Origin: Macrostomum lignano
Lineage: Eukaryota
DNA: 64,000 bases
Direction: 5' to 3'
Assembly (NCBI GenBank): GCA_002269645.1
Contig: NIVC01002100.1
Coordinates: forward strand, 124,001 to 188,000
The notes beneath the pieces were generated by a model. That model had not been told where the DNA came from, made no database searches, and worked only from the letters and a program-made list of their open reading frames with translations. The translations under genes and the position numbers were made by a program. Positions 14,301-43,140 of the stretch are shown here, in pieces (position 1 is the stretch's first letter; each line of letters starts with the position of its first letter).

Positions 14301-15066
14301 AGAACCCCAGCTGCTCAGTCTAGTGACTGCAGAACCCCAGCTGCTCAGTCTGGTGACTGCAGAACCCCAGCTGCTCAGTCTGGTGACTGCAGAACCCCAG
14401 CTGCTCAGTCCAATGACTGCCACCCCACATCACTCCCGCAGCGCTGGGACCTGTCCGTCAGTCCGTCGGTTCGAGTCACCCTGTCGATGGCACTGCTCAG
14501 CTCCGGTGCGGTGCCCACCCTGGTGTGCTCGGGCGCCAGCAGCGGCGTCAAAAACTGGATGGACGTGAAGGCTCTGTGCAACCAGACCGCCTTCAGGAAC
14601 AATCTGAAGGATCAGTTTGAGCTAGACAAAGCTCTGGACCAGGTGAGACGCTCTCCCATGCAGTTCTAATTTACATCTCCTTTCTCAGCACACCAAGTCA
14701 CCTACCTTTGCTGTTCTGTCGTTCCAGATGACCTCAACTTTGCCCAACAAGCAGACGATCAGCGTGGAGCTGTCCGACGTCACCAACATTGTGCTCCTCT
14801 TTCAGGAGGTCAGAAAAAGCTTTGCTTTTGCGTGTTTCACTTTCTTATTTTAAGGAAATCTGCTTCTGCTTTCCAGACTACTGATATAAGTAGCAATCCT
14901 CGCATTTTAATATTAAAATCTAAGAAACAATGAAAGACAACCTTGTTGGATTCATTTCCGTAGAACTTGTGCCGCTCATTCATCTTCTGATTCAGTTCGA
15001 CCAAATTAGAAAGGACGGCACGCTGAATGTCTTCAGCGACATCTACAGAAACTTGAGAGCTCTGAT

Positions 15067-15110
<44 letters not shown>

Positions 15111-18100
15111 GCGGCAGCAGCGGCAGCAGCATAACCCAGCTGCTGGATATGATCGACAGCCTCAGCCGGCTGGTGTGCGGCAGCGGGGCGACTGTCTTCA
15201 CTCAGTACGCCGATGTGCGCGCTCGCATGGTGACGCCACAATGCCGCCCACTACTGTTGCTGGCAGCAACTCGTCCATTGACCTCAGCGTCCTGGCCGGA
15301 GGACTGTGAGATTGTTGGGGAATTCCTTTTGTGCTCTTGTTTCTCTGAATGGGGCTGGGTGGCCCCGGCTTATCTGGCTGGGGCTGGGTGGCCCCGGCTT
15401 CTCTGAATGGGGCTGGGTGGCCCCGGCTTATCTGGCTGGGGCTGGGTGGGCAGTGGCCCCGGCTCTAACAGTGAATCTGATGTCTGTATATTGGCTTAGT
15501 GTTCCATTTTTGCTTCACATGACCATGTAAAAGTGGTCTTCCTTGTTTTCATAGCAAGCATTTTTTGCTCCATCGACCGCCTGCAGTTTGCTACAACACG
15601 AAGTACCAGAATGCCATTTTCGGCGGCATCAAGCAGCTGGCGTCTTCGCTAGGATTTGGCAGCATCTTCGACATCATTTTCGGCGTCATTCCCTATTATC
15701 CTGACGTGCCCCAGACTCGAAATTTTCTTTCAAAGGTAAGCGGATAATATATAATAGGGTGATTAGTCTTTTAGAAACTTTTTAGCCCTATATTTCACTT
15801 CTTTGGTGGATTTCAGTTAAACGAAACGTTTTTGAGCATGAGCATGACGTCGTATTTGGCGGAGAACTTTACCCAGGATGAGAGTCCGCGCATTGCCAAC
15901 TTTCTGGCCAACAGCAGTCAGATGGAGTCTGTCAGGGTGAGCAGTTTTGCTAGAATTGTACTAATTAACCTGCGTTTAAGTAAATCGTTTCACGTACGTT
16001 GCTCCGTGAGAGCCAACCCTATCTGCACACTGTGTGCGCTTCCTGACGACGAGAAATTCAGCGATCCTGTAGACGTACAGCCTGTGTAGAGTGTTCACCA
16101 GCGACGTACCTGTGTACAAGTCAAATGCCGCCTTTATTTTTTCACAGTACCCAAAATCCCACCTGTTTAGATGAACAGATGCATGGCTTGGCTCACGTTT
16201 GACTGTACAGTATCCAGATGCCAAAGGCTTATGGAGGCTAATTTATTCCTGGACAGACTGTGGTCCCGGTCCCGTGTTGCTACGAATTGTCTCGTGTTAT
16301 AAATATAGTAACTATAATACATGAAGCTAAAAGGGGCGTCTCACTTACCCATGACAACTATCTATCACATTACCACCGCAGAACGCTCTGACCACATGCA
16401 GCAACGTGCTCGGCAGCACACCGTACGGTCTGCTCTGCAGCAATTTGTCAGTATTTCTGGCTCCATACCCGGACATTGAGCCGCCCTCTGTTAGCATGGG
16501 CAACTGGCGAGACCTTCTGGACACGGTGGACTCTCTAATGCGCAGGTTGTACTTCTCTACCGCCTGCTTCCGCATGAATAAACTGTACGGCTTCGAGAGC
16601 GAGCCGCTGCTAGAGAATTACACCAACTTCCTGATTGACGAGTTCGGCAAGAATAGAGGCGTAACAAAGCCGAAGTTCATTGCCTCATTGGTGTTTGACA
16701 AACTGACGCCCAGCTTCACGAAGTACCGGCTGCGATACGAGCAGAAGTCGGTGGACGGCACGCGAAACTTTAAAGTGTTGGACCGCACATTTAGACCCAG
16801 GCCGAGGAACTCTTTCCCTACCGATTTCAAGTACTTCACTTCCTTCTTTTTGCACATTCAGGTGAGTCTCTCAGCATTTCAGTAGTAAAGTATCTTGTCC
16901 TGAATTCCCATGCCTACTGGACAATTTAAAAAATCTATTGCTTCTTGCCTGAAAAAATAAAGTTTATTAAACATTAAGCATCTGATTTGCTCATCCACAG
17001 GAGCTGCTTGAGCACGGCATCCAGGCAGCCGTGACTGGTGTGAACGCGCCGTTCCAGACCTATATAAACATGTTCCCGTCGGCCTGCTTCCAGCAGGACA
17101 ACTTCGCCAACGTGATGGGCTCCTTCCTGCCCATGATCATGACCATCTCCTGGATTTACAACGTGTCGCTGCTAGTGAACGCCATTGTCTACGAGAAAGA
17201 GACGCGGCTGAAAGAGATGATGAAGATCATGGGGCTGTCTGACGGAGTGCACTGGGTCTCCTGGTTCATCACCTCTCTGATCATCATGGTTATCGCTAGC
17301 GCTTTTATGGTTCTGCTTCTGAAAACCGGGCAGCTTGTCGTGTACTCAGACCCTCTGCTGTTGTTCCTGTTTATCGTGTCGTTTGTTGTGAGCACAATTT
17401 GTGAGGCCTTCTTTATTTCAATTTTCTTCTCAAACTCGAGCGTGGCGGCCGCCTTCGCCGGCGTGATCTACTTCCTCGGCTATGTGCCGTACAGCGTGGT
17501 TGACAGCTTCTCGGACAGTATGACTCGGCCGCAGTACTTGTTGAGCTGCCTTATTCCTCAGCTAGCATTTGGAGTGGGCTGCAAGTTCATTGGCAGCTGG
17601 GAGCTCGCTTCGGTCGGGCTGCAGCACAAAAACTTTTACGATTCACCGCTTGCCACTAGCGAATTTACATTCAACCAGGTTGGTTTTCCGAAAAATAATT
17701 TGTAGTTCTTCGTTAACAACTATCAGGTAACTAAGTCAAAGAACCGTTACTTAGCTGATGCTATCATATACCTAATACGTTTCAAAATCCTCAGGTAGTC
17801 GTTATGATGTGGATAGACTCTGGCATTCTGATGCTGCTCACCTGGTACCTGGAGAAGGTGTTTCCGGGAGCCTATGGAGTGCCCAAACCGTGGTACTTTC
17901 CGTTCTCGCCGTCTTACTGGTGCGGTCAGTCAAAGAAAGCTCTGACAGTTGATGTCGAAGGTGGCATTGACAATCTGGGCGCCTCTGCCTCATCCCTGGC
18001 ATCGTCCCCAGTGTCCGACTCGTCCAGATCCTCCCAAGAAAAGCCTGCTTCAAACGGAGTCACGGCTGGTGTAGAGTTGAATGGTCACAACTCTTCGCAC

Positions 18101-21100
18101 TTCGAAGACGAGCCAAAGCACCTGAGCGTTGGCATCAGCGTCAGGAACCTCACCAAGGTCTACGAGCCCGGCAGGTGCGCCTGCAAAAAGAATGCGAAGC
18201 CCTTCACGGCTGTGGACAATCTGAGCTATAATTTCTACGAAGGACAGGTCACCTCGTTCCTTGGTCACAATGGCGCTGGTAAATCCAATGCAACAGATAT
18301 TATTACTTCCAAGGCTCGTAAATTTAACACACGCGAAATTTGATCTCTGAATAACGGTATATACCTTGTGTTCTAAACAGGTAAAAGCACGACAATGTCC
18401 CTTCTGACGGGTTTGTACACACCAACATCGGGCACCGCCTTTATCGGCGGGTACGACATCCGCACAGAGATGGACCAGATTCGCCAACAACTCGGCCTGT
18501 GTCCTCAGCACAATGTGCTTTTCGACACTCTGACGGTGGAGGACCACATCTACTTCTACGGCATGCTCAAAGGCCTCAGCAGGGCGGAGGTCGCCCAGCA
18601 GGTTGACTCGTTCATCGCAGACGTCGGCCTACAGAAAAAGAAGTACGAAATAAGCAAGAATCTGTCAGGCGGGATGAAGCGAAAGCTGTCTGTCGCCATG
18701 GCGTTTGTCGGCGGATCGAAGGTCGTCGTACTGGACGAGCCAACCGCTGGTGAGTCGGCGGTTTTGTACCGACAAGATATTTCTTTCAGCCAACATCCGT
18801 TTGACAAAAAAACTGCGAATTTTAGGCGTCGACCCGCACGCGCGTCGCTCGATCTGGGACGTGTTGGCGAAGTTCCGTCAGGGCCGCACCATCATCCTGA
18901 CCACCCACCACATGGACGAGGCGGACATTCTGGGCGACCGAATCTGCATGATTAACAAAGGCCGTCTCGTGTGCTCAGGCTCTCCGATGTTTCTCAAGAA
19001 AGTGTTTGGTGAGGGCTACACCCTGACTCTGGTAAAGGCGTCCTTAGACTTCGATACGGATAAAGTTCTGAGCTTAGTGCAGTCTGAGGTCTCAGAGGCG
19101 AGCCTGGGGGAGTGCACATCCAGCGAAATCAGCATAAAGCTGCCATACAGCTCTGTGCCTCTGCTTGCTGGCCTGTTTGCTAGCCTTGATGAGAAAATGG
19201 CCAACTTAAACATAGCAACTTATGGTATCGAGGACAGCTCGCTTGAAGAAATTTTCCTAGCTGTGACGGGTTGCAGCTTGGAGAACAGCGAGGAGCTGCT
19301 CGATGATCCCTCTGTTGTCGGTTTCCGGCCGACTCTGCGGGAAAGTGTCCGGCGTAGGCAGCTGCAGCGCGCGATGCTCGGCTGCAGAAGTGCCGCTGAC
19401 AGCGTTGTTGGAGCCGCCTCAGAAGACACTCCTAGTGAGCTTCCTATCAACTCCAGCTCCGAGTGCATCTGCCCTTACGATCCTGTCGATGATGTGGTTT
19501 CTTCCGTGGCCTCTGCAGTGCCTTCAACTGAGCCTGCGTCCTTGCGAAAGCATGAGCCAAGCCGAACGCGTCGGCCTTTGTGGCAGCAAATCAAGGCGCT
19601 CTGGCTAAAACGCTTTCACGTTCTGCGTCGCTCAAAGATCGGATTCCTCGCCGAGTTTGTGCTGCCTGCAGTCTTTATCCTATTGACCCTTGCTCTGCTG
19701 CAAATTGTGCCCAAAGACGGCGACAGTCCACCGATGGAGCTGGCGCCCTGGTACATGCTCGGCAAGCCAGAGCGATCTCGCCTCAAGGACCTATCAGTGT
19801 TCCAGAGCCGCAGCCTGACCGCCTACCCAAACAACCACAGCCTGACCGACCTGTCCAACCGGCTGATGCTGCACATGAACAGCACGGACTTCCTCGGAAC
19901 TCGCTGCATGCGAGAGGATGTGTTCAGCAACCCCGACTTCCCGTGCAAGACGCAGCGACGAGGCTCTGTGTGGTCTGAGACTCCCAGCAACCTGCCCAGC
20001 AACACATCGTGGTGTCAGTGCTCGTACAAGGACTACCCGAACAGCGCCAAGTGCGTTGACTGGCCAACGCCAGCTCGTAAGTCTCTGATGAGCTCCGATA
20101 TTGTGGAGAGCATGCAGGGCTACAACCTGACAAACTACATTCAGTCAACAGTGATGGAGTACTACCGAAAGAGATTCGGAGGCTACACGCTGTTCGTGAA
20201 CGACTCGCAGCCAGTCAGTGCAGACGCGCAAAGTGCCAATGTTGAGGCGCAGCATTTTCTACGGACTTTAAATAACCTGACAGTCGGGAATTCAACAGAC
20301 TGGTAAGCAAAACTTGTTTACGTTTATTGATAAACGGCTCTGTAATATCCTGCGGGCCGTTGAAAGCGCAATAGTTTTAAGTTCTAAAACTTCAAAATTT
20401 TGCTGTTTAACAGGTTCATTGGACAGGTTTTGTCTTATCTTGAGAGCGTCCGGCTGCCAGCTAATCTGAGCTCCATTGTGAACCAAGTCTGGTTCGACAA
20501 CCGGGGCTACGTGTCCGGGCCTGCCTACCTCAACACCCTCAGCAACGCCATCATGAGGGCTCTGGCTAACAAGAGCATCGGCTCGCCTGACCAGATCGGC
20601 GTGTCCGGCTGGACTCACCCCATCACGCCTCGAACAACCTACATAAAGAATGTTCTTAACGCAAACACGGTAGTATCAGCCATGACAGTGGTGTCCATTA
20701 TCTTCGCCCTGTCCTTCATCCCCGCCAGCTTTGTGCTCTTCCTCATCTCGGAGAGAACCACAAACGCTAAGCACCTGCAGTTCGTGTCCGGAATTAACCC
20801 TACTACGTACTGGATCGTGAACCACATCTGGAACCTGTTGAACTACATGGTGCCGCTGACCATTGTGATCCTCTTGTTCGTGGCATTCAAGAACTATGAG
20901 TTCGTTGGTTCGCAGACCATCGGACCGTTCCTGCTGACCATGGTTCTTTTCGGGTTCGCCAGTGCGCCGCTCATGTACCCCTTCAGCTGGGTGATGACCG
21001 TTCCGAGCAAGGCGTTCACCATGCTAGCCTGCCTGAACTTGGGCATCGGGTTCACAACAACAATGTCCGTCACAATTGTCAGGATGATAGGCGAGCAAAA

Positions 21101-24100
21101 CAACGATCAGAGCATGATAAACACCGCTGATACTCTGAAAGCCGTTTTTCTTCTCCTGCCGCACTTCTGTTTGGGCCAGTCTCTCATGGAGTTAAACATC
21201 TACTACCAGGTATTGCTGGTCAATTGCAATTTAATTTTTTTGCTGCTTTAGAAACATTTAGGGACTACATTAATGATGGCACACTTTTCCTGCAGATCAA
21301 TGTCAGACTGGCGGAGCTGATGAAACAGACTGGAGCAAGTGCCTCTGACTTGAGCAGGTATGTTGAAGGTTTCGACGCGTATGACAACCCCTGGAGCGCC
21401 TCTGGCCGATATCTGGCCTGCCTTGTGGCGCACAGTGTTGTGTACTTTGCGCTCGTGCTGCTGCTCGAGTACAACTGCTGCTGCAAGCAGGGCCTCGTGT
21501 CCTCGCGCTTCTTCCGCCTCTTCTACCGCGCCGAGTACGAGCGCGCGCTGCGGCAGCCGGAAGCAGCGGAGATCGACGATGACGTGCTCGCTGAAGCTGC
21601 CAAGGTTGACGGAGCCGGCGCCAGCTCCTACTTGCTCGAACTGCAGCGGCTCGTCAAGATTTTCAGCACCAGCTCCGGACCGAGAGCCGCCGTCAAAGGC
21701 ATCAGTCTGGGAGTGAAGTCTCAGGAGTGCTTCGGCTTCTTGGGCGTCAACGGAGCTGGCAAGACGACCACGTTCAAGATGCTGACTGGTGAGTCGCTGG
21801 GAGCAGATGCTGTCCGTAGGTTCAAGAGGTCCTATCGATTTGCTTTTTGCACTTTAAATGCTCAATGCATGCATTTTCACCCTCGATGCCTCGATGACCT
21901 CAGGTGACCTCACACCGACGAGCGGAGACGCTCGAGTCGGCGGCTTCTCAATCCTGACGGAGGCTCTCGAGGTGCACAAGCAGCTGGGATATTGTCCCCA
22001 GTTCGATGCGCTGCTGCCACTACTGACCGGCAGGGAGACGCTGCAGCTGTACGCGAGGATTCGAGGCGTGGAGGAGGAGGACATCGACCAGCTGGTGGAG
22101 ACCATCTCAAAGAGGTTCGTCACCGATCTTGCTCTTGCTCGCGTTACTCTAATAAGTGAAACGATGGAAGTGAAATTGAAATTAAATGAATGTTACTCTA
22201 AAAAGTGCGCTTTTGAAATGAGAAGATTGTACGCAGGGCCACCTCGACACCGCAGGGTGGGCATCGAGGCGCACCTGGACAAGACCACTCAGGAGTACAG
22301 CGGAGGCAACAAGCGCAAGCTCTCTTGCGGCATCGCGTTCATCGGCAACCCGCCGATCGTGTTCCTGGACGAGCCAACTGCCGGCATGGACCCTGGAGCT
22401 CGCAGATTCCTTTGGCGCTGCATCCAACGCATGGTCACTGCTGGCTCGTGCGTCATTCTCACAACTCACAGCATGGAGGATTGCCAAGCGCTGTGTCACA
22501 GGCTCACCATCATGGTGAGAGCAGCTCAGTGCTGGTATTGCAGCTCATGCAGCAGCCAAGCAGCTCACTTTCCCCACCATACCTTCACTAACATCTCACA
22601 CAGGTGAACGGCAGACTGCAGTGCATCGGCAGTCCTCAGCACTTGAAGAACAAGTTCGGCCAAGGGTTCACCATCTTCCTGCGCGTTCGTCAGCCGCAGT
22701 CGCAGGAGGCGACATCCGCCTCTGCCTCGGCCTCCGCTACCATCGATAACACGGAAGGTCAGCTGGAGAGAGCTCACGAAGCGTTCATATCGGCCTTTCC
22801 GGACGCCATGCTGTGCGAGAACCACGCGGCTGTGCTGCAGTACCAGCTGAAGCAGACCGTGAGGCTCAGGACCATCTTTGAGAGCGTCCAGAGGCTCAAG
22901 GACAACGGTCTGGTGCTGGACTACAGCGTCAACCAGACCACTCTGGACCAGGTAACCTCATTGTTTAACCTCACAAGTAAAGCGTTTTTGCTGATAGCCT
23001 ATGACAGTGCATGCCAATTCCGGTGCTGCAGGTGTTCATCAACTTCGCCAAGAACCAGACGGAGACATCCGAAGAGACCAGTCGCAAAGACAAGGGTTTG
23101 CTGAAGCGGCTAAAAAGTAAGTGGGGGTGTTTTGACACTTGACCTAAGTCATGGTTTCAGCTGGTAGCATCTACAGACGACGTCAGCAGTGCCTGTATTG
23201 TTAGGGTAGTCTGAGGCTCCAACTGACCTCTACCTGACCGCCCCGACCCTGACCCTGTCGCTGCTCTCTTTAGGACAGCGCGCTTTTGTTTTCGTTGCTG
23301 TTGTTGGTGGTGGTGGTGGCGGTGGTGGTGGCGGTGGTGGTGGTGCTGGTGCTGGTGGTGGTGGTGGTGGTGGTTGTGGTGGTGGTGGTGGTGGTGCTGC
23401 TGCTGCTGCTGCTGCTGTTGGTGGTGGTGTCATTGTTGCTGTGGTTACTGTAAATGCAGGTCATCTTTGATCAGTGTCCCTATGCAAGCGGATTCCTATT
23501 TGGCTCCACGTCAAGAGCATCTCAGCCAGACTTTTTTCCTTTTGCCCAGACTGCATGAGCTCAAGGAAAGTCAGCGACGCGAAATTGTCAGACGAGGATG
23601 AGGCCGATGGTGCCCACAGCGGGTGCTCACGTGAGGCGGCATGGGCGGCCCCGGTGCTCAATGGTAGCGATATCAGTTTGAAATCAATAAAAGGCATGAA
23701 TAGAGCCGCTTTCAATTGTTCGCAAGTATCAATACTTATCGCTGATCAATTATGAGTTTGTCTCGTGATTCACCGCGCAAATTATAGAAAAATATTTCTA
23801 GTATTATGGATATGAGCCCCCGCTTCTCACTACTTCTTGATTGATTTGCTGCTTTTAATGCATACCAGAGTACACCGATATAGTTCCGGTGCATGCATTG
23901 TCCTGTTTCTAACAATGAAGTTAACATGCTCTTTTGACTTTGACAGAGCTGGGCCGCAAGAAGCCGGCGGCCCGCTACCAGCCTTCCAGCCAGGCTGCCG
24001 GCCCGGCGCCCCCGGTTGCTGCCAGCGGCGACGGAGCTCGGAGCGGCGTCTGCGATAGTGGGGACGCGGCGACTTGTGAGTTGGTTTTGTTAGTCTGCCG

Positions 24101-24368
24101 GGTTAGGTGTAACAGGTGATATTCAGTCTGCTGTGCCTTCTATGTTGGCTGGACTAGCAATCCAATCTACTGTAATATCCATATTGGCTAGACTAGCAAT
24201 CCAATCTACTGTAATATCCATATTGGCTAGACTAGCAATCCATTCCACTCCCTCATTCCAGTCGCCGGCCGCCAGAACGCGGCCTTCAGTGCCGAAGAGA
24301 CCCCCAAAGAGCCGCCTGCTGCCCCGGCCTGCAAGTGGGTGGACTTCAACGAAGACTCAGTGGCTTGA
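11319..24368 (+). CDS. ABCA1-like: ABCA-subfamily full transporter, paralogue B (about 2460 aa with the inferred tail)
   Basis: Exons: 11319-11387 ([23 protein letters not shown]), 11466-11692, 13557-13672, 13767-13888, 14442-14642, 14728-14808, 14996-15305, 15587-15735, 15817-15936, 16382-16861, 17001-17678, 17795-18278, 18381-18749, 18826-20302, 20414-21209, 21296-21788, 21904-22114, 22256-22514, 22604-22951, 23032-23116 (VFINFAK motif). Inferred tail exons: 23550-23630, 23947-24075, 24262-24368. Both NBDs are intact ([22 protein letters not shown] and [27 protein letters not shown]). Unspliced read-through of exon 20 would stop at 23142 instead, so the 3' end is less certain than the core. 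Confidence 0.9.
12599..13503. repeat. 43-bp minisatellite, about 21 copies, intron 2 of gene B
   Basis: Unit GCTGGTCCAGTTCTCTGCA(G/A)CCCAGCTGCTC(C/T)ATCACATCCAT. Confidence 0.97.
13919..14420. repeat. 30-bp minisatellite, about 16 copies, filling intron 4 of gene B
   Basis: Unit CTGCTCAGTCT(G/A)GTGACTGCAGAACCCCAG. Confidence 0.97.
15068..15130 (+). repeat. Coding (GGC)13 plus AGC/GGC repeat giving poly-Gly/GSS in exon 7 of gene B
   Basis: In frame within exon 14996-15305: ...RALI-G13[13 protein letters not shown]... Confidence 0.9.
15342..15465. repeat. Short nested duplication (about 59 bp x2, built from about 29-bp subunits), intron 7 of gene B
   Basis: CTCTGAATGGGGCTGGGTGGCCCCGGCTTATCTGGCTGGGGCTGGGTGG occurs twice. 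Confidence 0.85.
23295..23432. repeat. Compound (GGT)n/(GCT)n trinucleotide tract
   Basis: Direct reading: ggtggtggt...gctgctgct. Confidence 0.93.
24150..24245. repeat. About 41-bp tandem repeat, 2.3 copies
   Basis: GACTAGCAATCCAATCTACTGTAATATCCATATTGGCTA repeated; lies between inferred tail exons of gene B. Confidence 0.85.
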
Positions 24369-24699
24369 AGTGCTCAACTTTGAGATTGAAGCTCATGCAG
24401 CGTGTATAATTGTCACTTTTTTGTACCCTGTTGATCTCTAAAACTATTGCTGACTCATATTGATGCCGTTTTAATGATAACTTGCCCAAAGCACTATTAA
24501 CTAAACAAAATATTTTGCAACTGGTGAGATACGTAATAATCACAATTATTTTGTACAATTTTAGGTATGCATTAGAGGTATGTTCCGTGCTCTTCTGCGT
24601 TAAATCAGTGTCCACACCTTGCAGGCATTCGTGCATTCATGCGACATGTGCTGGTTGAATTTGGGAACTTATAGGCCAGTTGGGACACTTTTTAGACTG

Positions 24700-25670
24700 T
24701 TCAGACAGTATTGGGACTGTCCGGATATTATTGGGACTGTCCGGACATTAGCGGGACTGTTGGGAAAATATTGGGACTGTCCGGATATTAGCGGGACTGT
24801 TGGGAAAATATTGGGACTGTCCGGATATTAGCGGGACTGTTCGGAAAATATTGGGACTGTCCGGACATTAGCGGGACTGTTGGGAAAATATTGGGACTGT
24901 CCGGACATTAGCGGGACTGTTCGGAAAATATTGGGACTGTCCGGACATTAACGGGACTGTTCGGAAAATATTGGGACTGTCCGGATATTAGCAGGACTGT
25001 TCGGAAAATATTGGGACTGTCCGGATATTAGCAGGACTGTTCGGAAAATATTGGGACTGTCCGGACATTAGCAGGACTGTTCGGAAAATATTGGGACTGT
25101 CCGGACATTAGCGGGACTGTTCGGAAAATATTGGGACTGTCCGGACATTAGCGGGACTGTTGGGAAAATATTGGGACTGTCCGGACATTAGCAGGACTGT
25201 TCGGAAAATATTGGGACTGTCCGGACATTAGCAGGACTGTTCGGAAAATATTGGGACTGTCCGGATATTAGCAGGACTGTTGGGAAAATATTGGGACTGT
25301 CCGGACATTAGCGGGACTGTTGGGAAAATATTGGGACTGTCCGGACATTAGCGGGACTGTTCGGAAAATATTGGGACTGTCCGGACATTAGCAGGACTGT
25401 TCGGAAAATATTGGGACTGTCCGGATATTAGCGGGACTGTTCGGAAAATATTGGGACTGTCCGGACATTAGCGGGACTGTTCGGAAAATATTGGGACTGT
25501 CCGGATATTAGCGGGACTGTTCGGAAAATATTGGGACTGTCCGGACATTAGCGGGACTGTTGGGAAAATATTGGGACTGTCCGGACATTAGCGGGACTGT
25601 TCGGAAAATATTGGGACTGTCCGGACATTAGCGGGACTGTTGGGAAAATATTGGGACTGTCCGGACATTC
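24700..25670. repeat. 40-bp minisatellite (dimer of two related 20-mers), about 24 copies
   Basis: TTGGGACTGTCCGGA(C/T)ATTA + GC(G/A)GGACTGTT(C/G)GGAAAATA. Confidence 0.97.
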
Positions 25671-26009
25671 TTGACTGTCTTAACTTTCTTGACCGTGTCA
25701 AATTCAGATGGCAATTGAAACCATTCGCAAATTCTTTTGAGGTGTTTGTTTGTTAAATGTCTAAATGTATTGCCTTAATCAAAAGATTCGATTTTTTATG
25801 CGTTTCTTAGATTTTGTTTATTTTTTTATTCAGATATTTCTGTGATATTAAATGCACATTCTGAGACCTGCAGTAGTTCTTCTTTTGCCAACCAATATAA
25901 ACCGCGATCAGCCACTTTCAAGGAAACCTCTGTCACAAGTTCTATTCCAAATTGTTGTGAAAATTTGAATTCAACTGATCTTTGTTCAAGCTCTTTTCGC
26001 TGAAGTTCA

Positions 26010-27480
26010 CCCCATTGTACACTCACCCCATTGCACACTCACCCCATTGTACACTCACCCCATTGCATACTCACCCCATTGCACACTCACCCCATTGCAC
26101 ACTCACCCCATTGCACACTCACCCCATTGCACACTCACCCCCTACTGCACACTCACCCCATTGCACACTCACCCCATTGCATACTCACCCCATTGCACAC
26201 TCACCCCATTGCATACTCACCCCATTGCACACTCACCCCATTGCACACTTACCCCATTGCACACTCACCCCATTGCACACTCACCCCATTGCACACTCAC
26301 CCCATTGCACACTCACCCCATTGCACACTCACCCCATTGCATACTCACCCCATTGCACACTCACCCCATTGCACACTTACCCCATTGCACACTCACCCAC
26401 CCCATTGCACACTCACCCCATTGCACACTCACCCCATTGCACACTTACCCCATTGCACACTCACCCCATTGCACACTCACCCCATTGCACACTCACCCCA
26501 TTGCACACTCGCCCCATCGCACACTTACCCCTTTGCACACTCACCCCATTGCACACTCACCCCATCGCACACTCAGCCCCTACTGCACACTCACCCCATT
26601 GCACACTCACCCCATCGCACACTCAGCCCCTACTGCACACTCACCCCATCGCACACTTACCCCATTGCACACTCAGCCCCTACTGCACACTCACCCCATC
26701 GCACACTTACCCCATTGCACACTCAGCCCCTACTGCACACTCACCCCATCGCACACTTACCCCATTGCACACTCACCCCATTGCACACTCACCCCATTGC
26801 ATACTCACCCCATTGCACACTCACCCCATCGCACACTTACCCCATTGCACACTCACCCCATTGCACACTCACCCCATTGCACACTCACCCCATTGCACAC
26901 TCACCCCATCGCACACTCACCCCAACTGCACACTCACCCCATTGCACACTTACCCCATTGCACACTCACCCCATTGCACACTTACCCCATTGCACACTCA
27001 CCCCATTGCACACTCGCCCCATCGCACACTTACCCCATTGCACACTCACCCCATTGCACACTCACCCCATTGCACACTCACCCCATTGCACACTCACCCC
27101 ATCGCACACTCAGCCCCTACTGCACACTCACCCCATTGCACACTCACCCCATCGCACACTCAGCCCCTACTGCACACTCACCCCATCGCACACTTACCCC
27201 ATTGCACACTCAGCCCCTACTGCACACTCACCCCATCGCACACTTACCCCATTGCACACTCACCCCATTGCACACTCACCCCATTGCACACTCACCCCAT
27301 TGCACACTCACCCCATTGCACACTCACCCCATTGCACACTCAGCCCCTACTGCACACTCACCCACTACTGCACCTCACCCCCTGCTGCACCCTTATTGCA
27401 TACTTCACCACATTGCACACTCACCCCCTACTGTACACTCACCCCCTGCTGCACCCTTATTGCGTACTTCACCACGTTGC
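26010..27480. repeat. 16-bp minisatellite, about 90 copies, degenerating at its right end
   Basis: Unit TTGCACACTCACCCCA with variants (TCGC, CTTA, CAGCCCCTACTG); explains three long 16-aa periodic ORFs. Confidence 0.97.
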
Positions 27481-27925
27481 AAACTTGCAATATGAGACAC
27501 TTCGTACATGCACTACGTAAAGCATAAGTATTGATATACCGCATAGTAGACACTTGGACGGCAGAAGATGAACTCTACAATGCGACACAGTAACATATAT
27601 TTGTGAATCAATGCTGACAGAGCCGCTACAAAAGGACAGGAAAATAAAATTAATTTAGGAATGCAGCTGTTGTACTTCTACCTGCATGTTCTGCTTGCAT
27701 ACTAGTAGCTAAAAACATTCTGCATTTTTGAGCACCTACGGGCGTAAATAGAGGAACCAGCAGTGGAGTAAAATCTTATTGCTAGAGGGCTAAAACTGAC
27801 TTCATTTGACTTATCTGGCATGTACAGTGACTAAAAGCAACACTGAAACTTCGCGTCATATTTCATCATTTCACGCGCGAAAGATTTAAGCAGGAGAATT
27901 CCGACTGGAGTTGAATGTCCAGCCC

Positions 27926-30900
27926 TCATGTGGCCATCTCTGACTGATTCTTAGCGAAATTGATGAACACCTGGAAAAATGAAACAAGATTGAAAATTTC
28001 AACTAAACCCATAAAATATGTTGCTCGCTCTTGACAGAAGTACCAGTTTACCTGGTCGAGAGTGGTCTGGTTGACGCTGTAGTCCAGCACCAGACCGTTG
28101 TCCTTGAGCCTCTGGACGCTCTCAAAGATGGTCCTGAGCCTCACGGTCTGCTTCAGCTGGTACTGCAGCACAGCCGCGTGGTTCTCGCACAGCATGGCGT
28201 CCGGAAAGGCCGATATGAACGCTTCGTGAGCTCTCTCCAGCTGACCTTCCGTGTTATCGATGGTAGCGGAGGCCGAGGCAGAGGCGGATGTCGCCTCCTG
28301 CGACTGCGGCTGACGAACGCGCAGGAAGATGGTGAACCCTTGGCCGAACTTGTTCTTCAAGTGCTGAGGACTGCCGATGCACTGCAGTCTGCCGTTCACC
28401 TGTGTGAGATGTTAGTGAAGGTATGGTGGGGAAAGTGAGCTGCTTGGCTGCTGCATGAGCTGCAATACCAGCACTGAGCTGCTCTCACCATGATGGTGAG
28501 CCTGTGACACAGCGCTTGGCAATCCTCCATGCTGTGAGTTGTGAGAATGACGCACGAGCCAGCAGTGACCATGCGTTGGATGCAGCGCCAAAGGAATCTG
28601 CGAGCTCCAGGGTCCATGCCGGCAGTTGGCTCGTCCAGGAACACGATCGGCGGGTTGCCGATGAACGCGATGCCGCAAGAGAGCTTGCGCTTGTTGCCTC
28701 CGCTGTACTCCTGAGTGGTCTTGTCCAGGTGCGCCTCGATGCCCACCCTGCGGTGTCGAGGTGGCCCTGCGTACAATCTTCTCATTTCAAAAGCGCACTT
28801 TTTAGAGTAACATTCATTTAATTTCAATTTCACTTCCATCGTTTCACTTATTAGAGTAACGCGAGCAAGAGCAAGATCGGTGACGAACCTCTTTGAGATG
28901 GTCTCCACCAGCTGGTCGATGTCCTCCTCCTCCACGCCTCGAATCCTCGCGTACAGCTGCAGCGTCTCCCTGCCGGTCAGTAGTGGCAGCAGCGCATCGA
29001 ACTGGGGACAATATCCCAGCTGCTTGTGCACCTCGAGAGCCTCCGTCAGGATTGAGAAGCCGCCGACTCGAGCGTCTCCGCTCGTCGGTGTGAGGTCACC
29101 TGAGGTCATCGAGGCATCGAGGGTGAAAATGCATGCATTGAGCATTTAAAGTGCAAAAAGCAAATCGATAGGACCTCTTGAACCTACGGACAGCATCTGC
29201 TCCCAGCGACTCACCAGTCAGCATCTTGAACGTGGTCGTCTTGCCAGCTCCGTTGACGCCCAAGAAGCCGAAGCACTCCTGAGACTTCACTCCCAGACTG
29301 ATGCCTTTGACGGCGGCTCTCGGTCCGGAGCTGGTGCTGAAAATCTTGACGAGCCGCTGCAGTTCGAGCAAGTAGGAGCTGGCGCCGGCTCCGTCAACCT
29401 TGGCAGCTTCAGCGAGCACGTCATCGTCGATCTCCGCTGCTTCCGGCTGCCGCAGCGCGCGCTCGTACTCGGCGCGGTAGAAGAGGCGGAAGAAGCGCGA
29501 GGACACGAGGCCCTGCTTGCAGCAGCAGTTGTACTCGAGCAGCAGTACGAGCGCAAAGTACACAACACTGTGCGCCACAAGGCAGGCCAGATATCGGCCA
29601 GAGGCGCTCCAGGCGCTGTCGTGGATGTCGATTCCCCCGATAATTTTTTTAAACACTGCGCTGCTGAGTCCGGTTTCAATTCTCATTTTCTCTAGCTTGA
29701 CCGATACCTGCGCCAAGATCAAGGCAGATGTTTTATTAATTTCTGAATGGTTTGAAGCACCGGTAGCAGGCCCTCAGAATAAAATTATGCATTTATTCTG
29801 CGCAGTTTCTCTGGAGCTTCTCAAGCTCCATGGAGACAGTAGGGACCAACTTGAGAAGGGGTCGGCAAACCACAAAGTCTAAATAAAGAATCCAGCTCAA
29901 GGCTGCGTGCCATGCCCAGATGAGAGAAGAAATGAGAAAATAGATGAGAGAATGAGAGAAAAGTTAAGAGGAGATGAGTGGACGAGAGAAGAAGAGAAGA
30001 CATAAAAACATGAGAAGAGTCCTTATCGTAAACCTTAAGAGGGCCAGCCTGCTTATGGCCTGCTATGGTGAAGTTTCAGAGAACCTAAGGGCCTGATGGA
30101 GAAGCATCGCGGGCCCCATCTGGTCTGAATCAGAGGCTCAGACCCAGTCAACTGCGTGGCTTTTCCCTGCTGCAATCGGAGTTTCGACTTGAAAGACTTT
30201 CTACGGCAAAATATACATGCTACGCGGATTATCAGACTGAAGCGATGGTAGGATTAGCAAATTTCAATATACGAGTTATGATAAAAGCAGCAAATGCGTC
30301 ATGACTGCGACTGGCCGAGCTCTCACCTGATAGAAGACATTCAGTTCGACTAGCGACTGGCCCAGACAGAAATGTGGCAGCACGAGAAATGCGTTCTTGA
30401 GTATGCCCGCCACGTGCAGCAGTGATTCGTCATTGTTTTGCTGACCGATGAGTCTGACAATGGTCACTGACATTGTGGTCACGAGTCCAAAGCACAAGTT
30501 CAGGCATGACAGCAAGGTGAACGCCTTGCTCGGAACGGTCATCACCCAGCTAAAGGGGTACATCATTGGTGCACTGGCGAACCCGAAAAGTATCATGGTC
30601 AGCAGGAACGGTCCGATGGTCTGCGCACCAACGAACTCGTAGTTCTTGAATGCCACGAACAAGAGGATCACAATGGTCAGCGGCACCATGTAGTTCAACA
30701 GGTTCCAGATGTGGTTCACGACCCAGTACAGAATGGGGTTAATTCCGGACACGAACTGCACTTGTTTAGAATTTGTACTTCTCTCGGAGATGAGGAAGAG
30801 TACAAAGCTGGCGGGAATGAAGGACAGGGCGAAAACAATGAACACAATTATCGCGGCGGACATTGCCACATCGTTTTTAAGTACGTTTTTTGCGTGCTTC

Positions 30901-33900
30901 AGCCGAGAAGTGATGGGGTGAGTCCAGCCGGACACGCCGATCTGGTCAGGCGAGCCGATGCTCTTGTTAGCCAGAGCCCTCATGATGACGTTGCTGAGGG
31001 TGTTGAGGTAGGCAGGCCCGGACACGTAGCCTCGGTTGTCGAACCAGACTTGGTTCACAATGGAGCTCAGATTTTCTTGTTGTCGACTGCTCTCCAGCCA
31101 ACTGTACAGCTGCTCCGTGCTCCTAATTGGGGATCAGATATTAGCGATTCGACTGACTGACTGACTGACTGACTGACTGACTGACTGACTGACTGACTGA
31201 CTGACTGACTGACTGACTGACTGACTGACTGACTGACTGACTGACTGACTGACTGACTGACTGACTGACTGACTGACTGACTGACTGACTGACTGACTGA
31301 CTGACTGACTGACTGACTGACTGACTGACTGACTGACTGACTGACTGACTGACTGACTGACTGACTGACTGACTGACTGACTGACTGACTGACTGACTGA
31401 CTGACTGACTGACTGACTGACTGACTGACTGACTGACTGACTGACTGACTGACTGACTGACTGACTGACTGACTGACTGACTGACTGACTGACTGACTGA
31501 CTGACTGACTGACTGACTGACTGACTGACTGACTGACTGACTGACTGACTGACTGACTGACTGACTGACTGACTGACTGACTGACTGACTGACTGACTGA
31601 CTGACTGACTGACTGACTGACTGACTGAATTAAAGGAGCCTACCTGTCAGAAGTATTGCTGCCAATGAGCGTGTCCATTTGCCTTAGCACCAACGAAGTC
31701 TCCTTTCCAGCGCGGGCCGCGTCTGCACTGACTGGCTGCGAGTCGTTCACGAACAGCGTGTAGCCTCCGAACCTCTTTCGGTAGTACTCCATCACTGTCG
31801 ACTGAATGTAGTTTGTCAGGTTGTAGCCCTGCATGCTCTCCACAATGTCGGAGCTCATCAGAGACTTCCGAGCTGGCGTTGGCCAGTCAACGCACTTGGC
31901 GCTGTTCGGGTAGTCCTTGTACGAGCACTGACACCACGATGTGTTGCTGGGCAGGTTGCTGGGAGTCTCAGACCACACAGAGCCTCGTCGCTGCGTCTTG
32001 CACGGGAAGTCGGGGTTGCTGAACACATCCTCTCGCATGCAGCGAGTTCCGAGGAAGTCCGTGCTGTTCATGTGCAGCATCAGCCGGTTGGACAGGTCGG
32101 TCAGGCTGTGGTTGTTTGGGTAGGCGGTCAGGCTGCGGCTCTGGAACACTGATAGGTCCTTGAGGCGAGATCGCTCTGGCTTGCCGAGCATGTACCAGGG
32201 CGCTAACTCCATCGGTGGATGTTCACCTACTTTAGGCACAATCTTGAGCAGAGCGAGGGCCAGGAGGATAAACATTGGAGGTAGCACAAACTCGGCGAGG
32301 AATCCGATCTTTGAGCGACGCATTACGTGGAAGCGCTTGAGCCAGAGCGCCTTGATTTGCTGCCACAAAGGCCGCCGCGTCCTTCGTACTTTCTGCTGAC
32401 TCTGAGACTCTGCTGATATATTTTCTCTTGAACTGCGGCTGCTCTCACCGCCTTCTGTATTGCTACTCATCGCTTGTTCCAAGTACCGCCGTCGTACACT
32501 TTCCCTATAAGACGGGCGAAACTCGACAACGGAGGAGTTACAGAGCAGTTCCTCTTTTTTTTGATCAGGCAGCCCAGTCACAGCGAGAAAAATCTCTTCG
32601 AGGGAGCTGTCCTCGATACCGTATGAAGAGATTCCCAGCTGTAGGTGAAGTTCGTCCAAAGTTTCAAACAGGTCAGCAAATAGAGGCACAGAGCTGTATG
32701 GCAGCCTGATGTTGATCTCACTGGATGTGCACTCAGCCAGATTTGCCTCTGGGACCTCAGACTGCACCGAATTCAGCACTAAATCAAGCTCGCAGTCTGG
32801 CGAAGCCTTCACCAGAGTCAGGGTGTAGCCCTCACCGAACTCTTTCTTCAGAAACATCGGAGAGCCTGAGCACACGAGACGGCCCTTGTTGATGACGCAG
32901 ATTCGGTCGCCCAGAATTTCCGCCTCGTCCATGTGGTGGGTGGTCAGGATGATGGTGCGGCCCTGACGATACTTTGCCAATACGTCCCAGATCGAGCGAC
33001 GTGCGTGGGGGTCCACGCCTGAAGTTAAATATAATGGAGTACAATGGAGAATTCAAGAATTGGATTCCAAACGCAGACATTTCATACTTTATGTCGAAGG
33101 AACGCTTCATCTGGTTCTGAGACGGTCTAAACCCACAAAGTTTTGTCAATACAAAAGACTTCAAGAAAAATGGCGTAGTATAATTAAGTCAACTCTATTG
33201 GTTAATTTAACGAAATTTTGCTGATTCTGATAATTAAACACAGACAAAAATTGTTGAACTTCATGGAAACAACATGAAGCGGCGGTATTATAGTTGCAGC
33301 ATATTCTGGTCAACAGGGCTCTCTCTTTTTCTCGCTTTGTAAGAGAGAAAAATGTCTTCAAATGTCACCCAGGCCACCCGCAGAGCTCACCGGCAGTTGG
33401 TTCGTCCAGAACAACGACTTTCGATCCGCCTATAAATGCCAGGGCAACAGACAGCCTTCGCTTCATCCCGCCTGACAGATTACCGCAAATCTCGTGTCTC
33501 TTTTTTTCGAGGCCCACATCGGCGGCCAAGAAGTCAATCTGTACGTTCAGCTCCGCCCTGCTGAGGCCCTTCAGCATGCCGTAGAAGTAGATGTGGTCCT
33601 CAACCGTCAGGGTGTCGAACAGCACATTGTACTGAGGACACAGGCCGAGGTGCCTGCGAATCTGGTCCATCTCTGTGCGGATGTCGTACCCGCCGATGAA
33701 GGCGGTGCCCGATGTCGGCAGAAACAATCCAGTGAGAATCGACATTGTCGTGCTTTTTCCTGTGGCCAAAAGGTTACGTAAACTTTAATAGATCTGAGTT
33801 TGAATCAGCATACGAAAATGAATATCGGGTTCAGCAGCAGCAGAGCTTCGAGAACTAAAATCAGATTTGTCAGCGGTGCAACTCACCGGCGCCGTTGTGA

Positions 33901-36900: not shown

Positions 36901-39900
36901 CTTACCAGGTTCTTAACTGAGGAGTTTCTCAGTTGCTAGCCAAGAAGAAACGCAAAAGCAAGCAGGAAAGCCAAGTCCGACAAGTGTCACCAATACTGCA
37001 CGGAGCTGGAGGGCGCTACTTCACGCGTGGTCAAGACCCTCACTCTTGACGAGATGTCAAAGCTCTTAGTTCTCAAAAGATCAGGTGTATTACCCTCCAG
37101 TACGTGCCCAAGGCCCGGAAAGAGGCTACGATTGTTTTCATTTCCAAAGCTGGGAAGGGAGACTGTGAGTGCATCACTCTGCCAAAGCCTACCGCCCCAT
37201 CAGTCTGACGTCCCTCGTACTCAACCAGAATGCTGTTCGATCTGGATGTTTCATCGAAAGCGCTGCACGCCATTGCCGACAAGCTCATGTTAATGTGCCG
37301 TTTGAAACCTTTAGATGAGGCTTAGCTATGTGCGCAACTTATGAAATTTCCACCGTGGAAAACTTTGAGGTTGGGAAAGAATATGAAATTTCGAGCTTAT
37401 GAAACACCCGGCCCCCCTCCCGCCGAGGGTTTGCGGAATGAGCGGTGATGATTCCGCTCATGATGCATCCGGATGCCCAAAGACCCCTGCAGCTGATTCA
37501 AACTTAATATACGCAAAGAATCTTTGCTGTTTCAGAGGCAGCCAAGTCAGCGCAATGCCCAAACCGTTCAAAACACCCGAAACAAAATCGCACCAACCCG
37601 CATATTCGCCATCTCGCTGCTGTTGGTGATGAAGTTGGCGATGCGAGGACTCGTTGACTTCACGAAGTTCTCCGCTATGTAGGATGCCCAGGACGCTGCA
37701 ATAAGGGTCTCGTTCAGCTGGAGTGTTGAATTGTAGGTGTAAAGATGCTTGCATTGTTTTCAACTCTCAAAATTCAGTTTGTTTGCTTCATCGGCTTACT
37801 TTCTTGAGAAACTTTCGCGTCCTTTCTGATTCAGGATAGTAAAGGATTTCTCCGAACATGAGCCGTTTGAGGCCGGAGAACCCGAGCTTGTCGAGCAGCC
37901 AGTCAGGAAGCAGCAGGATGGCATTCTGATAGCGCTTGTCTGAGCAAACTGCGGGTGAGAAACGTCCTCTCTCTTCTTGCATTCAAAATTTAAAACTCTT
38001 TACTGCACAGTGAAGAGATCAGATAAAAATGGCACAAATATTTTTGATTTCCAACTCTAGAAGATAAAATCAGGTGATAGTTGAATGTCTTGATGATACT
38101 GACTGTGAGCAACACGACAATGAAAAGTCGCCACTCTATGCGCCAGTGAGCAATTTCTCTTGGACTATTCTGAAATAAAATATACGAGAAAACTGATCGG
38201 GGCAGCTTTAATCCGTCCAATCCTCGCACAACGCTCCCCCCCCTACTTCATTTCTCAACTTAAGTCTGCCGCGGCGTAGCTAAGATGCCTCACCTGCTAA
38301 GATTGAGACTTTACCTGCCCTCATAAAAGTGGCGACCACAGACAGAATCTTCTGTGATGGCGAAATTTTGATGTTGCTGAGTATCAATAGAAGATGCAAG
38401 TTGAGATAATTCTTGGGCTGCAGGAACACCCAAAGTGCTCCGAAAGCATATAAAAAACGTGAATTCTGAGGACTGCATTAGAAAACAAGGTGCTCACACT
38501 CCTCTGGAGGCACAATGGTTGTCAGATTGACTGTCTTCTCTGAATCGTTTGTCGATTTCTCGATTAATTCGTTTGGCTCGAAGTCTTCGGCTACGTCTTC
38601 GACCATCTCGCGGTCCAGGTAGTCCGACAGGACGTTCTTGCCGGAGCCGCAGACATGGCCGGCTAAGATCTTTACAGACCGCAGCCAGCCCTTCAGTCTG
38701 CTGCTCGACAGGCCTTCAGTCACATTCACGGCGAGGTCGCGCATCTTTCTAAACACGAGCAGCGTTCCATCGTTGCTCATCTCGTTAATCTGCGGGATAT
38801 TTTAATTCAACGTAATGTACGAAAGAAGAGCCTCGTAAGAGCGTGTGTTGTGCTGTCAGATCTACCATGATATCTATTTCAATTTGCCAATCTTCAACCA
38901 TGGAGCTTACCTGAGAAAGAAGCATCTGCAGACTCTTGAGGTCACTGGGGTTGAGCAGAACGCTGCGCTTGTTGCTGTCTGTAGAGGCCATCTTTTAATG
39001 AAAATGATTGGGTTGGAGTTGGAGTCACAAGGCTTAATTTGCTGCTAAGCTCTTTAACGCATAGGTAACCTCTAGTCTCTGGAAAGCACAGCTCTAGACA
39101 GGTGTCAAGAACTCCATCTCTCTCACCTGGGCCCGAACCGCGTCAAAATCCAGCTGAGACCGGAGGTTTTCGCGGAACCGCGGCTGCTTGCAGAGCTCCC
39201 GCACTGCCCGGGTCCAGTTGGCGGTGGCGCCGGCCCCGCTGCACAGGATATTGGGCAGCCCGCTCTGCGACAGCATCAGGCCAGCCATGCCGGGGCCCAT
39301 GGACAGGTCCAAGAGCTGCAATGGGTGATGTCTAATTGTACAAAATTCTAACACGGAGTCCCGTAGGAAGTGGTGAGCATGTCCTAAGACTTTATCCGTA
39401 CAGCTCATAGTTAATACTTAATAGTTAATATTTCATTGTTCTCAGTTCAGAGGCACATTCAGGCAGTGAAATTCAGCTAATTTTATTCCACTTTACCTTG
39501 GGAAACGGCACTTCCGCCGTCTCGAAAGACGCTCTCTGCTCCTTTGTTACCTTGACGCCATCGAACAGCGCGCTGCCGTTGTTTTTGAAAAGCGAGCGGA
39601 GTTTGATCTTCTTCATCTCTGCAATGTCATGACCCATTTTCATGCAGGGACGGGTGATTGCAGGGATAGGAGAGAGCAGGGATAGGAGAGTGCAGGGACA
39701 GGAAAGAGCAGGGATAGGAGAGTGCAGGGACAGGAGAGAGCAGGGACAGGAGAGAGCAGGGACAGAAGAGTGCAGGGACAGGAGAGTGCAGGGACAGGAG
39801 AGAGCAAGGACAGGAGAGTGCAGGGACAGGAGAGAGCAGGGACAGGAGAGAGCAGGGACAGGAGAGAGCAAGGACAGAAGATTGCAGGGACAGGAGAGTG

Positions 39901-42943: not shown

Positions 42944-43140
42944 AGCACCAGGGGCGCCAGCACCAGGGGCGCCAGCACCAGGGGCGCCAGCACCAGGGGC
43001 GCCAGCACCAGGGGCGCCAGCACCAGGGGCGCCAGCACCAGGGGCGCCAGCACCAGGGGCGCCAGCACCAGGGGCGCCAGCACCAGAGGCGCCAGCACCA
43101 GGGGCGCCAGCACCAGGGGCGCCAGCACCAGGGGCGCCAT
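42944..43140. repeat. 15-bp GC-rich minisatellite, about 13 copies
   Basis: Unit GCGCCAGCACCAGGG. Confidence 0.97.

Follow-up and report, generated by a model that had tools for sequence, protein, structure and literature searches.

A 1566-bp tract of probable interlocus gene conversion, introns included, in an ABCA gene cluster of Macrostomum lignano

Why do two convergent genes of Macrostomum lignano share 1566 bp of almost identical sequence, three introns included, while the rest of the pair has diverged? The question is raised by a stretch of 64,000 nucleotides (positions 124,001 to 188,000 of contig NIVC01002100.1, assembly GCA_002269645.1), which is called the window below and from whose first letter all coordinates are counted. 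Three related genes were modelled in the window:

1–5318, minus strand: gene A, modelled part of 7 exons, 3′ end lost at the left window edge
16382–23142, plus strand: gene B, modelled part of 11 exons, 1901 aa, open to the stop codon
27926–36442, minus strand: gene C, modelled part of 11 exons, open to the stop codon

The three models are all open and have a common exon structure. Their orientation alternates, so that A–B is a head-to-head pair and B–C a tail-to-tail pair, with A and C in direct orientation. Upstream coding blocks were found by tblastn at about 11463–16300 for gene B, and those of C and A extend to about 40589 and about 8770, respectively. The exon numbers 16–19, given for the tract by an earlier sequence-only reading, equal the provisional model numbers plus 2, which would fit the roughly nine upstream coding blocks. 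The Pfam scan of the open stretches at 41.6–49.7 kb revealed no neighbouring genes or transposons.

The Pfam analysis assigned ABC2_membrane_3 to two stretches (E = 2.7e-45), ABC_tran to two stretches (E = 7e-59), and the C-terminal regulatory domain R1_ABCA1 (PF23321) with E = 4.6e-13. The best PDB matches were ABCA1, ABCA4, ABCA3, and ABCA7 (E = 1e-156 to 1e-132). Since two membrane domains and two nucleotide-binding domains occur together with R1_ABCA1 and with structural matches to ABCA proteins, the genes belong to the ABCA subfamily. Judged by their sequences, A, B, and C are bona fide ABCA (ABCA1/ABCA4-type) lipid-transporter paralogues and old copies. Like human ABCA1, ABCA4, ABCA3, and ABCA7 (PDB 7tdt, 7lkp, 7w01, 8edw), they probably have the TMD-ECD-NBD-R order twice. 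The human transporters are only distant homologues, as the nearest proteins among 5.8 billion are 41–52% identical. Neither the protein searches nor a metagenome scan found a relative above 52% identity over an extended alignment; the loci of the metagenome scan reach 46% at most, and the top protein matches are scattered among molluscs, vertebrates, arthropods, and cnidarians.

The shared sequence forms the two arms of an inverted repeat in the 3′ parts of genes B and C. The arms were delimited by an inverted-repeat search, by self-BLAST, and by an ungapped antiparallel register in which the two positions sum to 51003:

21390–22955, plus strand: arm 1, the homogenised tract in gene B, with exons 21296–21788 (3′ part only), 21904–22114, 22256–22514, and 22604–22951
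28048–29613, minus strand: arm 2, the homogenised tract in gene C, with exons 29707–29215 (in part), 29099–28889, 28747–28489, and 28399–28052
21789–21903, plus strand: intron of 115 nt, 100% identical to C 29214–29100
22115–22255, plus strand: intron of 141 nt, 100% identical to C 28888–28748
22515–22603, plus strand: intron of 89 nt, 100% identical to C 28488–28400
22956–28047: spacer of 5092 nt, holding the terminal exons of the two genes (B 23032–23142; C 27970–27926), the diverged introns before them, the flanking 3′ sequence, and a set of five tandem arrays ((TGG)x41.7, 39-mer x2.7, 40-mer x24, 16-mer x88, and 64-mer x3.4)

When 21390–22955 is compared with the reverse complement of 28048–29613, the 1566 bp differ by 2 mismatches and 0 gaps. 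The inverted-repeat search gave slightly longer arms (21372–22958 and 28045–29631, 99% complementary, 5086 nt apart), as did self-BLAST (21383–22958 against 29620–28045, 99.68% identity, 5 mismatches, 0 gaps). In the ungapped register, the sole mismatches inside the tract are at 21457 and 22945. The nearest outer ones are at 21389 and 22956, beyond which the identity in the register falls to chance level. Thus, the alignment reproduced what a sequence-only reading of this DNA had described, namely colinear, indel-free arms containing three whole introns. The two differences it had reported, GTG/GTA (Val) and CTG/CTC (Leu), are indeed two in number, at third codon positions and synonymous, although the first lies 2 nt from the place it gave (near 21459).

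Both ends of the tract were also recovered as that reading had placed them. The tract starts in mid-exon, at a CCC/GCC (P/A) codon preceding W-SASGRY, and ends 4 nt inside the next intron (GTAA|C versus GTAA|A). Only 10 bases match beyond the second mismatch, at 22945. They comprise the exon end and the splice donor, where chance or constraint could have conserved them, and the converted tract proper may be 21390–22944 with a single difference. The divergence of the next intron and the last exon was likewise seen in the spacer, which has no similarity between its two sides except for about 36 nt of the terminal exons.

How far does the tract stand out from the rest of the gene pair? Outside the tracts, the exons of B and C are about 69% identical and their synonymous sites are saturated. 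Synonymous differences per 40-codon window are mostly 0.3–0.96 there, while they are 0–0.07 in the 1566-bp tract and zero in all of its windows except the two end windows. In a permutation run test (Sawyer-type) on synonymous-capable codons, the tract has 373 successive codons free of differences, whereas the longest run in any of 5000 permutations was 60. The introns point in the same direction. All 345 intron bases of the tract are the same in B and C, while alignment fails for the other seven pairs of homologous introns, whose lengths differ several-fold (139, 116, 102, 76, 111, 86, and 80 nt in B; 793, 199, 127, 372, 521, 619, and 81 nt in C, in the same order). Since introns and synonymous sites are identical in a pair that is saturated elsewhere, protein-level selection cannot account for the identical arms, as had been argued from the introns at first reading.

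The GC content is also higher in the tract than in the rest of gene B, both in exons (0.60–0.62 versus 0.52–0.56) and in introns (0.43–0.53 versus 0.34–0.41). Over just three introns and four exons, the shift hints only weakly at GC-biased conversion, and it may simply be the composition of that part of the gene.

Is the 1566-bp tract the only one of its kind in the cluster? At least three homogenised tracts among A, B, and C are statistically supported, of which the 1566-bp B–C tract is the largest and youngest. The others, together with a candidate and the fragment of gene A at the window edge, are as follows:

B 18392–18985, plus strand, matching A 3189–2593: second tract (A–B), 597 aligned positions, 5 substitutions, one 3-nt indel
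19618–20228, plus strand: third tract, nested and three-way, inside one large exon
B 20463–20626, plus strand, matching C 31073–30910: candidate short B–C tract, 164 bp, 2 mismatches, borderline (P about 0.04)
1–57, minus strand: last 57 nt of gene A in the window, matching the C arm at 55/57 positions and the B arm at 54/57

The second tract spans a whole intron (18750–18825; 76 nt in B and 79 nt in A) that is near-identical in the two genes. Thus, the effect is reproduced in an independent gene pair. In the third tract, A and B match over 598 bp with 4 mismatches (19618–20215 and A 2083–1486), B and C over 486 bp with 4 mismatches (19743–20228 and C 32203–31718), and A and C over 473 bp with 2 mismatches. 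In the same run test, no permutation came up to the A–B runs (156 and 101 codons) or to those of B–C and A–C (103 codons). Two other stretches, A–B 17148–17278 and B–C 20815–20942, were rejected as tracts, being non-significant in the run test (P 0.55–0.9) and consisting of the most conserved protein motifs. The closest pair therefore changes along the genes: it is A–B at 18392–18985 (99%, versus 73–92% for B–C per 100-column window), all three genes are equally close at 19797–20097, and B–C is the closest pair from 21390 onward. Gene A may share the B–C tract beyond the window edge, to judge from its last 57 nt in the window, which follow 18 nt (positions 75–58) of only about 50% identity (9/18). 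It was discarded as an outgroup for the direction of conversion, as it overlaps the tract by only 101 nt and resembles both arms.

In summary, the cluster has a run of significantly low divergence, homogenised sites that are free of protein selection (synonymous sites and introns), and segments supporting different relationships among the three genes, each of which is a mark of gene conversion. It is thus very probable that the 1566-bp identity results from recent, and probably recurrent, non-allelic gene conversion within the three-gene cluster. Of the simple processes, only conversion between the inverted copies replaces a segment in register and without indels, between limits set by homologous exon sequence. 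A DNA break in one copy would have been repaired from the other copy, 5–8 kb away on the same chromosome, and the repair would have copied 1.5 kb in register with its three introns. The ends of the tract would be confined to exon sequence that is still homologous. Since such ends need homology, this accounts for the start in mid-exon and the stop at the exon-intron junction where the diverged final intron begins. Once the arms are identical, further conversion would become easier, and repeated events probably maintain the identity. Other events in the cluster, the older A–B tract and the three-way block, would have produced a mosaic of concerted and divergent evolution. B is the likely donor, as the tract introns have B-like lengths. 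One point tells against this explanation: the first event must have spanned three introns that were presumably heterologous, from exon anchors of about 70–85% identity, which is demanding for homologous repair.

Similar events are known from other animals. Interlocus conversion has been described for adjacent inverted paralogues in Caenorhabditis, including hsp16, hsp70, and other pairs (PMC3966223), and for Drosophila duplicates (PMC3924832). As in those pairs, neighbouring head-to-head or tail-to-tail paralogues have sharp-edged, near-identical tracts and a diverged remainder, the tracts run through short introns, and some parts of the genes are unconverted. In contrast to them, the present genes belong to the ABCA family, the tract is 1.57 kb in length with three introns instead of the typical few hundred bp, and three paralogues are involved, with one block common to all three. 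A literature search on gene conversion specific to ABCA genes found no relevant report.

The sequence-only reading had likened the arms to palindromes with arm-to-arm conversion. The in-register tract bears out the conversion, but not a process specific to palindromes. Palindromes of the sex-chromosome type are defined by arms longer than 10 kb with more than 99% identity (10.1101/800185, PMC5997626), and large ones are known as P1–P8 on the primate Y (PMC8600007), on the primate X (PMC8327919), and on the mouse X (10.1101/800185). The locus resembles them in its inverted arms of more than 99.9% identity, its unique spacer, homogenisation by conversion, a crossover that is expected to invert the spacer, and possibly GC enrichment, since GC bias is known from palindrome conversion (PMC8981503). 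However, the arms are 1.57 kb in length, neither above 10 kb nor even several kb at more than 99% identity throughout, and they start and stop within genes, holding only 3′ parts and no whole gene. They also lie within an old inverted duplication of about 12 kb per gene whose exons are otherwise about 69% identical. Moreover, A and C are homogenised in direct orientation. Thus, the process is general interlocus conversion and was not created by the palindromic geometry.

Could the identity have been made by the assembly? Collapse, a chimeric join, or polishing with mis-mapped reads might have given both paralogues the sequence of a single arm, the true arms being as diverged as the rest of the genes; repeats of near identity are well known for such errors. 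This is nonetheless quite unlikely: the arms are not byte-identical but have 2 differences, their ends keep register with the reading frame, and the models of both genes are open. Other pairs in the cluster carry older tracts that have diverged by 0.4–0.8%, including one with a 3-nt indel, and tracts of differing divergence are predicted by a biological process acting at different ages, not by a one-off error. In addition, the contig crosses a 12-kb satellite (23-bp unit) and many minisatellites with zero N, which speaks for assembly from long reads, and a single such read would cover the 8.2 kb of arm, spacer, and arm.

Alternatively, the 3′ part of one gene may have been replaced just once, by a template switch during replication (FoSTeS/MMBIR-type) or by a partial inverted duplication of recent date, with neither recombinational conversion nor ongoing homogenisation. 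This would also yield a contiguous young segment with introns, and the divergence of 0.06–0.13% is compatible with one recent event. This too has a low probability. In-frame, indel-free ends at homologous positions fit homology-guided repair and usually not microhomology switching, and several tracts of different age among three copies speak for a recurrent, homology-driven process. In either case, the result would operationally be a conversion.

It is also conceivable, though hardly to be expected, that the arms are selected as a recombination switch of terminal exons or as a source of hairpin RNA co-regulating the paralogues. If the arms crossed over, the 5.1-kb spacer would be inverted and the two terminal exons would trade places, a geometry known from human inverted repeats that toggle their spacer by inversion, those of the FLNA/EMD region and of F8 intron 22 (as cited by PMC8327919). 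In contrast to the human cases, the predicted inversion would disrupt nothing here: in silico, it swaps the terminal exons and 3′ flanks, and the frame of gene B stays open to a stop codon; by symmetry, that of gene C should also be open. If the switch were real, crossovers would exchange alternative tails (36 aa versus 14 aa) and 3′ UTRs between two ABCA genes. If the hairpin were real, convergent read-through into the opposite arm would give a 1.5-kb hairpin RNA. In either case, selection would maintain the identity of the arms together with repair mechanics, possibly in all three genes.

Finally, nucleotide-level constraint, such as an embedded RNA or regulatory element preserving the arms without copying, is barely credible: the tract does code for NBD2 and the R domain, where the protein is most conserved (the 473 aa encoded by the tract match ABCA1 residues 1834–2236 with E = 2e-156), but 345 intron sites and about 370 synonymous sites are unchanged in a gene pair saturated elsewhere, NBD1 of B and C has synonymous differences of 0.2–0.5 despite protein conservation equal to that of the NBD2 region, and no Rfam family matched anywhere when the entire window was scanned for embedded RNA.

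Gene conversion as such is an ordinary process whose mechanism and consequences are already textbook knowledge, and the locus is a clean, well-documented example of it. It is a tidy natural case of several whole introns being carried by conversion across paralogues of about 30% divergence. In practice, B and C are indistinguishable over their 3′ 40%, where reads, transcripts, and peptides are ambiguous, and trees or duplication dates drawn from the three genes depend on the segment chosen. The homogenised parts are the nucleotide-binding domains, the R1_ABCA1 domain, and part of extracellular domain 2, and the remainder is distinct. The ABCA genes of this cluster thus form a mosaic of three genes: their ATP-binding modules evolve in concert, while the membrane and extracellular parts diverge.

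A repeat search of the window recovered 21372-22958 and 28045-29631 as an inverted pair, 99% complementary and 5086 nt apart, and self-BLAST of the window aligned 21383-22958 with 29620-28045 at 99.68% identity with five mismatches and no gap. Read in the ungapped antiparallel register (p+q=51003), 21390-22955 shows mismatches at just two positions, 21457 and 22945. Flanking mismatches lie at 21389 and 22956, and outside them the register identity is at chance level. The two arm differences, GTG/GTA and CTG/CTC, are each at a third codon position. Three whole introns are included in this 1566-bp main tract:

Introns of the main tract (coordinates of the gene B arm)
21789-21903, first intron, 115 nt, GT..AG ends, no difference between the arms
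22115-22255, second intron, 141 nt, GT..AG ends, no difference between the arms
22515-22603, third intron, 89 nt, GT..AG ends, no difference between the arms

The identity stops 4 nt inside the next intron; the 10 identical bases past the 22945 mismatch are the end of the exon and the splice donor, and may lie outside the converted tract. Thus, the sequence-only reading, which had described colinear, gap-free arms with two silent differences, identical whole introns and this end point, was borne out.

The arms are the 3′ parts of two of three ABCA1/ABCA4-like paralogues, which were modelled by translation and by splice sites guided by the paralogues. The models of A, B, and C share their exon structure, and their frames are open.

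Modelled genes
5318 to the left window edge, minus strand, gene A, truncated there mid-exon
16382 to the stop codon at 23142, plus strand, gene B, eleven exons modelled
36442 to the stop codon at 27926, minus strand, gene C

Thus, A and B are head to head and B and C tail to tail. Further upstream, coding blocks extend to about 8770 (A), about 11463 (B), and about 40589 (C). Between A and B, the outermost homologous coding blocks are opposed across about 2.7 kb (8770-11457); this stretch, in which a 40-bp x16 tandem array sits, may be a bidirectional promoter region common to both genes. The B protein has two ABC2_membrane_3, two ABC_tran, and one ABCA1-type R domain, and its 473 C-terminal amino acids, encoded from the first tract exon onward, match the human ABCA1, ABCA4, ABCA3, and ABCA7 structures (E = 1e-156 to 1e-132). 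The coding part of the main tract corresponds to the last portion of the second membrane domain, the second nucleotide-binding domain (NBD2), and the regulatory domain. The top database matches are animal ABCA proteins with 41-52% identity, and no close relatives of the three genes were found in protein, metagenome or other collections.

Outside the homogenised segments, exon nucleotide identity is 69% for B-C, 68% for A-B, and 64.5% for A-C. In 40-codon windows, most values for the proportion of synonymous differences lie at 0.3-0.96, largely saturated. Homologous B and C introns outside the main tract are unalignable, with lengths several-fold apart. The first intron past the tract, with 80 nt in B and 81 nt in C, has diverged, as have the terminal exons.

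Lengths of the seven other introns
Gene B: 139, 116, 102, 76, 111, 86, 80 nt
Gene C: 793, 199, 127, 372, 521, 619, 81 nt

Thus, an old duplication contains the 1566-bp identity as a young island. A run test considered only codons whose amino acid is shared by the two copies and which can vary synonymously. The main tract contains 373 such codons in a row without a difference; when the same differences were permuted 5000 times, the longest run never exceeded 60, and its median was 25. This null is conservative, since it includes the invariant codons of the tract itself.

Are further segments shared among the three genes? I performed a three-way alignment and a segment scan, which gave the following tracts.

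Further homogenised segments
B 18392-18985 versus A 3189-2593, A-B tract, 597 aligned positions with 5 substitutions and a single 3-nt indel
B 19618-20215 (A 1486-2083), three-way block, A-B, 4 mismatches, nested, in the large exon
B 19743-20228 (C 31718-32203), three-way block, B-C, 4 mismatches, nested, in the large exon
473 bp, three-way block, A-C, 2 mismatches, nested, in the large exon

The A-B tract begins 11 nt inside an exon and spans the entire following intron, which is 76 nt in B and 79 nt in A but 372 nt in C. A, B, and C are identical over about 300 bp of the three-way block. The runs of 101, 156, and 103 codons in these extra tracts are longer than in any permutation; for a short patch shared by B and C (20463-20626) the result is borderline (P about 0.04), and the remaining high-identity patches among the paralogues were not significant in the run test. 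The last 57 nt of gene A in the window (1-57) are identical to the C arm at 55 of 57 positions, while the preceding 18 nt (75-58) show about 50% identity. Thus, the main tract may be three-way, but gene A leaves the window at this point. Divergence is 0.06-0.13% in the main tract, 0.4-0.8% in the three-way block, and 0.8% plus an indel in the A-B tract, which gives a relative order of the conversion events.

The tracts bear the signature of non-allelic gene conversion, since the replacement is sharp-edged, in-register, and indel-free, covers introns and synonymous sites, changes its closest pair from segment to segment, and left tracts of differing age. The explanation by conversion between the arms in the sequence-only reading was correct. 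The left end of the main tract lies within an exon and the right end at the final exon-homologous bases before a non-homologous intron, where homology-guided repair has to stop. One copy would have suffered a double-strand break or gap that was repaired off the other, and the identity once made would favour repeat events. The donor was probably B, because the tract introns are essentially within the B range (76-139 nt), while just two of the seven other C introns are that short. A and C share a tract although they lie in direct orientation, so the process does not need a palindromic arrangement. One replication-based template switch would be expected to give the same end product but leaves several tracts of unlike age unexplained. 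An assembly or polishing artefact would also make the arms alike; it is unlikely, since the arms differ at two sites, both frames are open, the other pairs hold independent, older tracts (one with an indel), and the contig crosses a 12-kb satellite and many minisatellites free of N, which implies reads long enough for the whole 8.2-kb structure. Nucleotide-level constraint on the arms is excluded in practice, since the first nucleotide-binding domain of B and C is equally conserved as protein yet shows a synonymous difference of 0.2-0.5, and an Rfam scan of the window gave no family.

Spacer inversion by a crossover between the arms is described for palindromes (PMC8327919), and the inverted geometry here would allow an arm crossover to flip the spacer of about 5.1 kb. 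When the spacer was inverted in silico, the frame of gene B stayed open and gained the terminal exon of C. Thus, the inversion would be structurally harmless, exchanging C-terminal tails and 3′ flanks.

In the ABCA cluster, both introns and intergenic DNA are unusually dense in minisatellites (periods of 15-43 nt, 13-88 copies each, match mostly 91-99%), and two large arrays are located in the spacer.

Minisatellites
7066-7901
8827-9462
12601-13502
13905-14410
24695-25669
26007-27445
39644-40165
40630-40962
42939-43139
43818-44831
46750-47035

An intron of gene C contains a pure (GACT)n microsatellite (31151-31628, 119.5 copies, 100% match) that is absent from the homologous B and A introns. 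Downstream of the cluster, 47226-49686 has several long open stretches (100-240 aa) on the minus strand and one on the plus strand; none has a Pfam match, and a gene missed by annotation or a decayed mobile element may account for them. The final 12.3 kb (51683-64000) consist of an AT-rich satellite with a 23-bp unit (consensus TGACGCTTCTATGATTTTTTACA, about 545 copies, 94% match), which continues past the right end of the window. Its self-BLAST gave matches in many shifted registers, a hint of higher-order structure.

Neighbouring inverted paralogues are well documented to undergo conversion with tracts that enter short introns, for instance in Caenorhabditis (reviewed in PMC3966223) and Drosophila (PMC3924832). 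The comparison with converting palindromes in the sequence-only reading holds for the mechanism but not for size, as such palindromes are defined by arms of >10 kb that are >99% identical (10.1101/800185, PMC5997626; compare PMC8600007, PMC8981503). No report of ABCA gene conversion of this type was found in the literature. The process at work in this cluster of three ABCA genes is thus a known one, mosaic concerted evolution through gene conversion, of which the case is a new example. In mapping, the 3′ part of B is indistinguishable from that of C, and for dating both are misleading; the 3′ part of gene A may be likewise.
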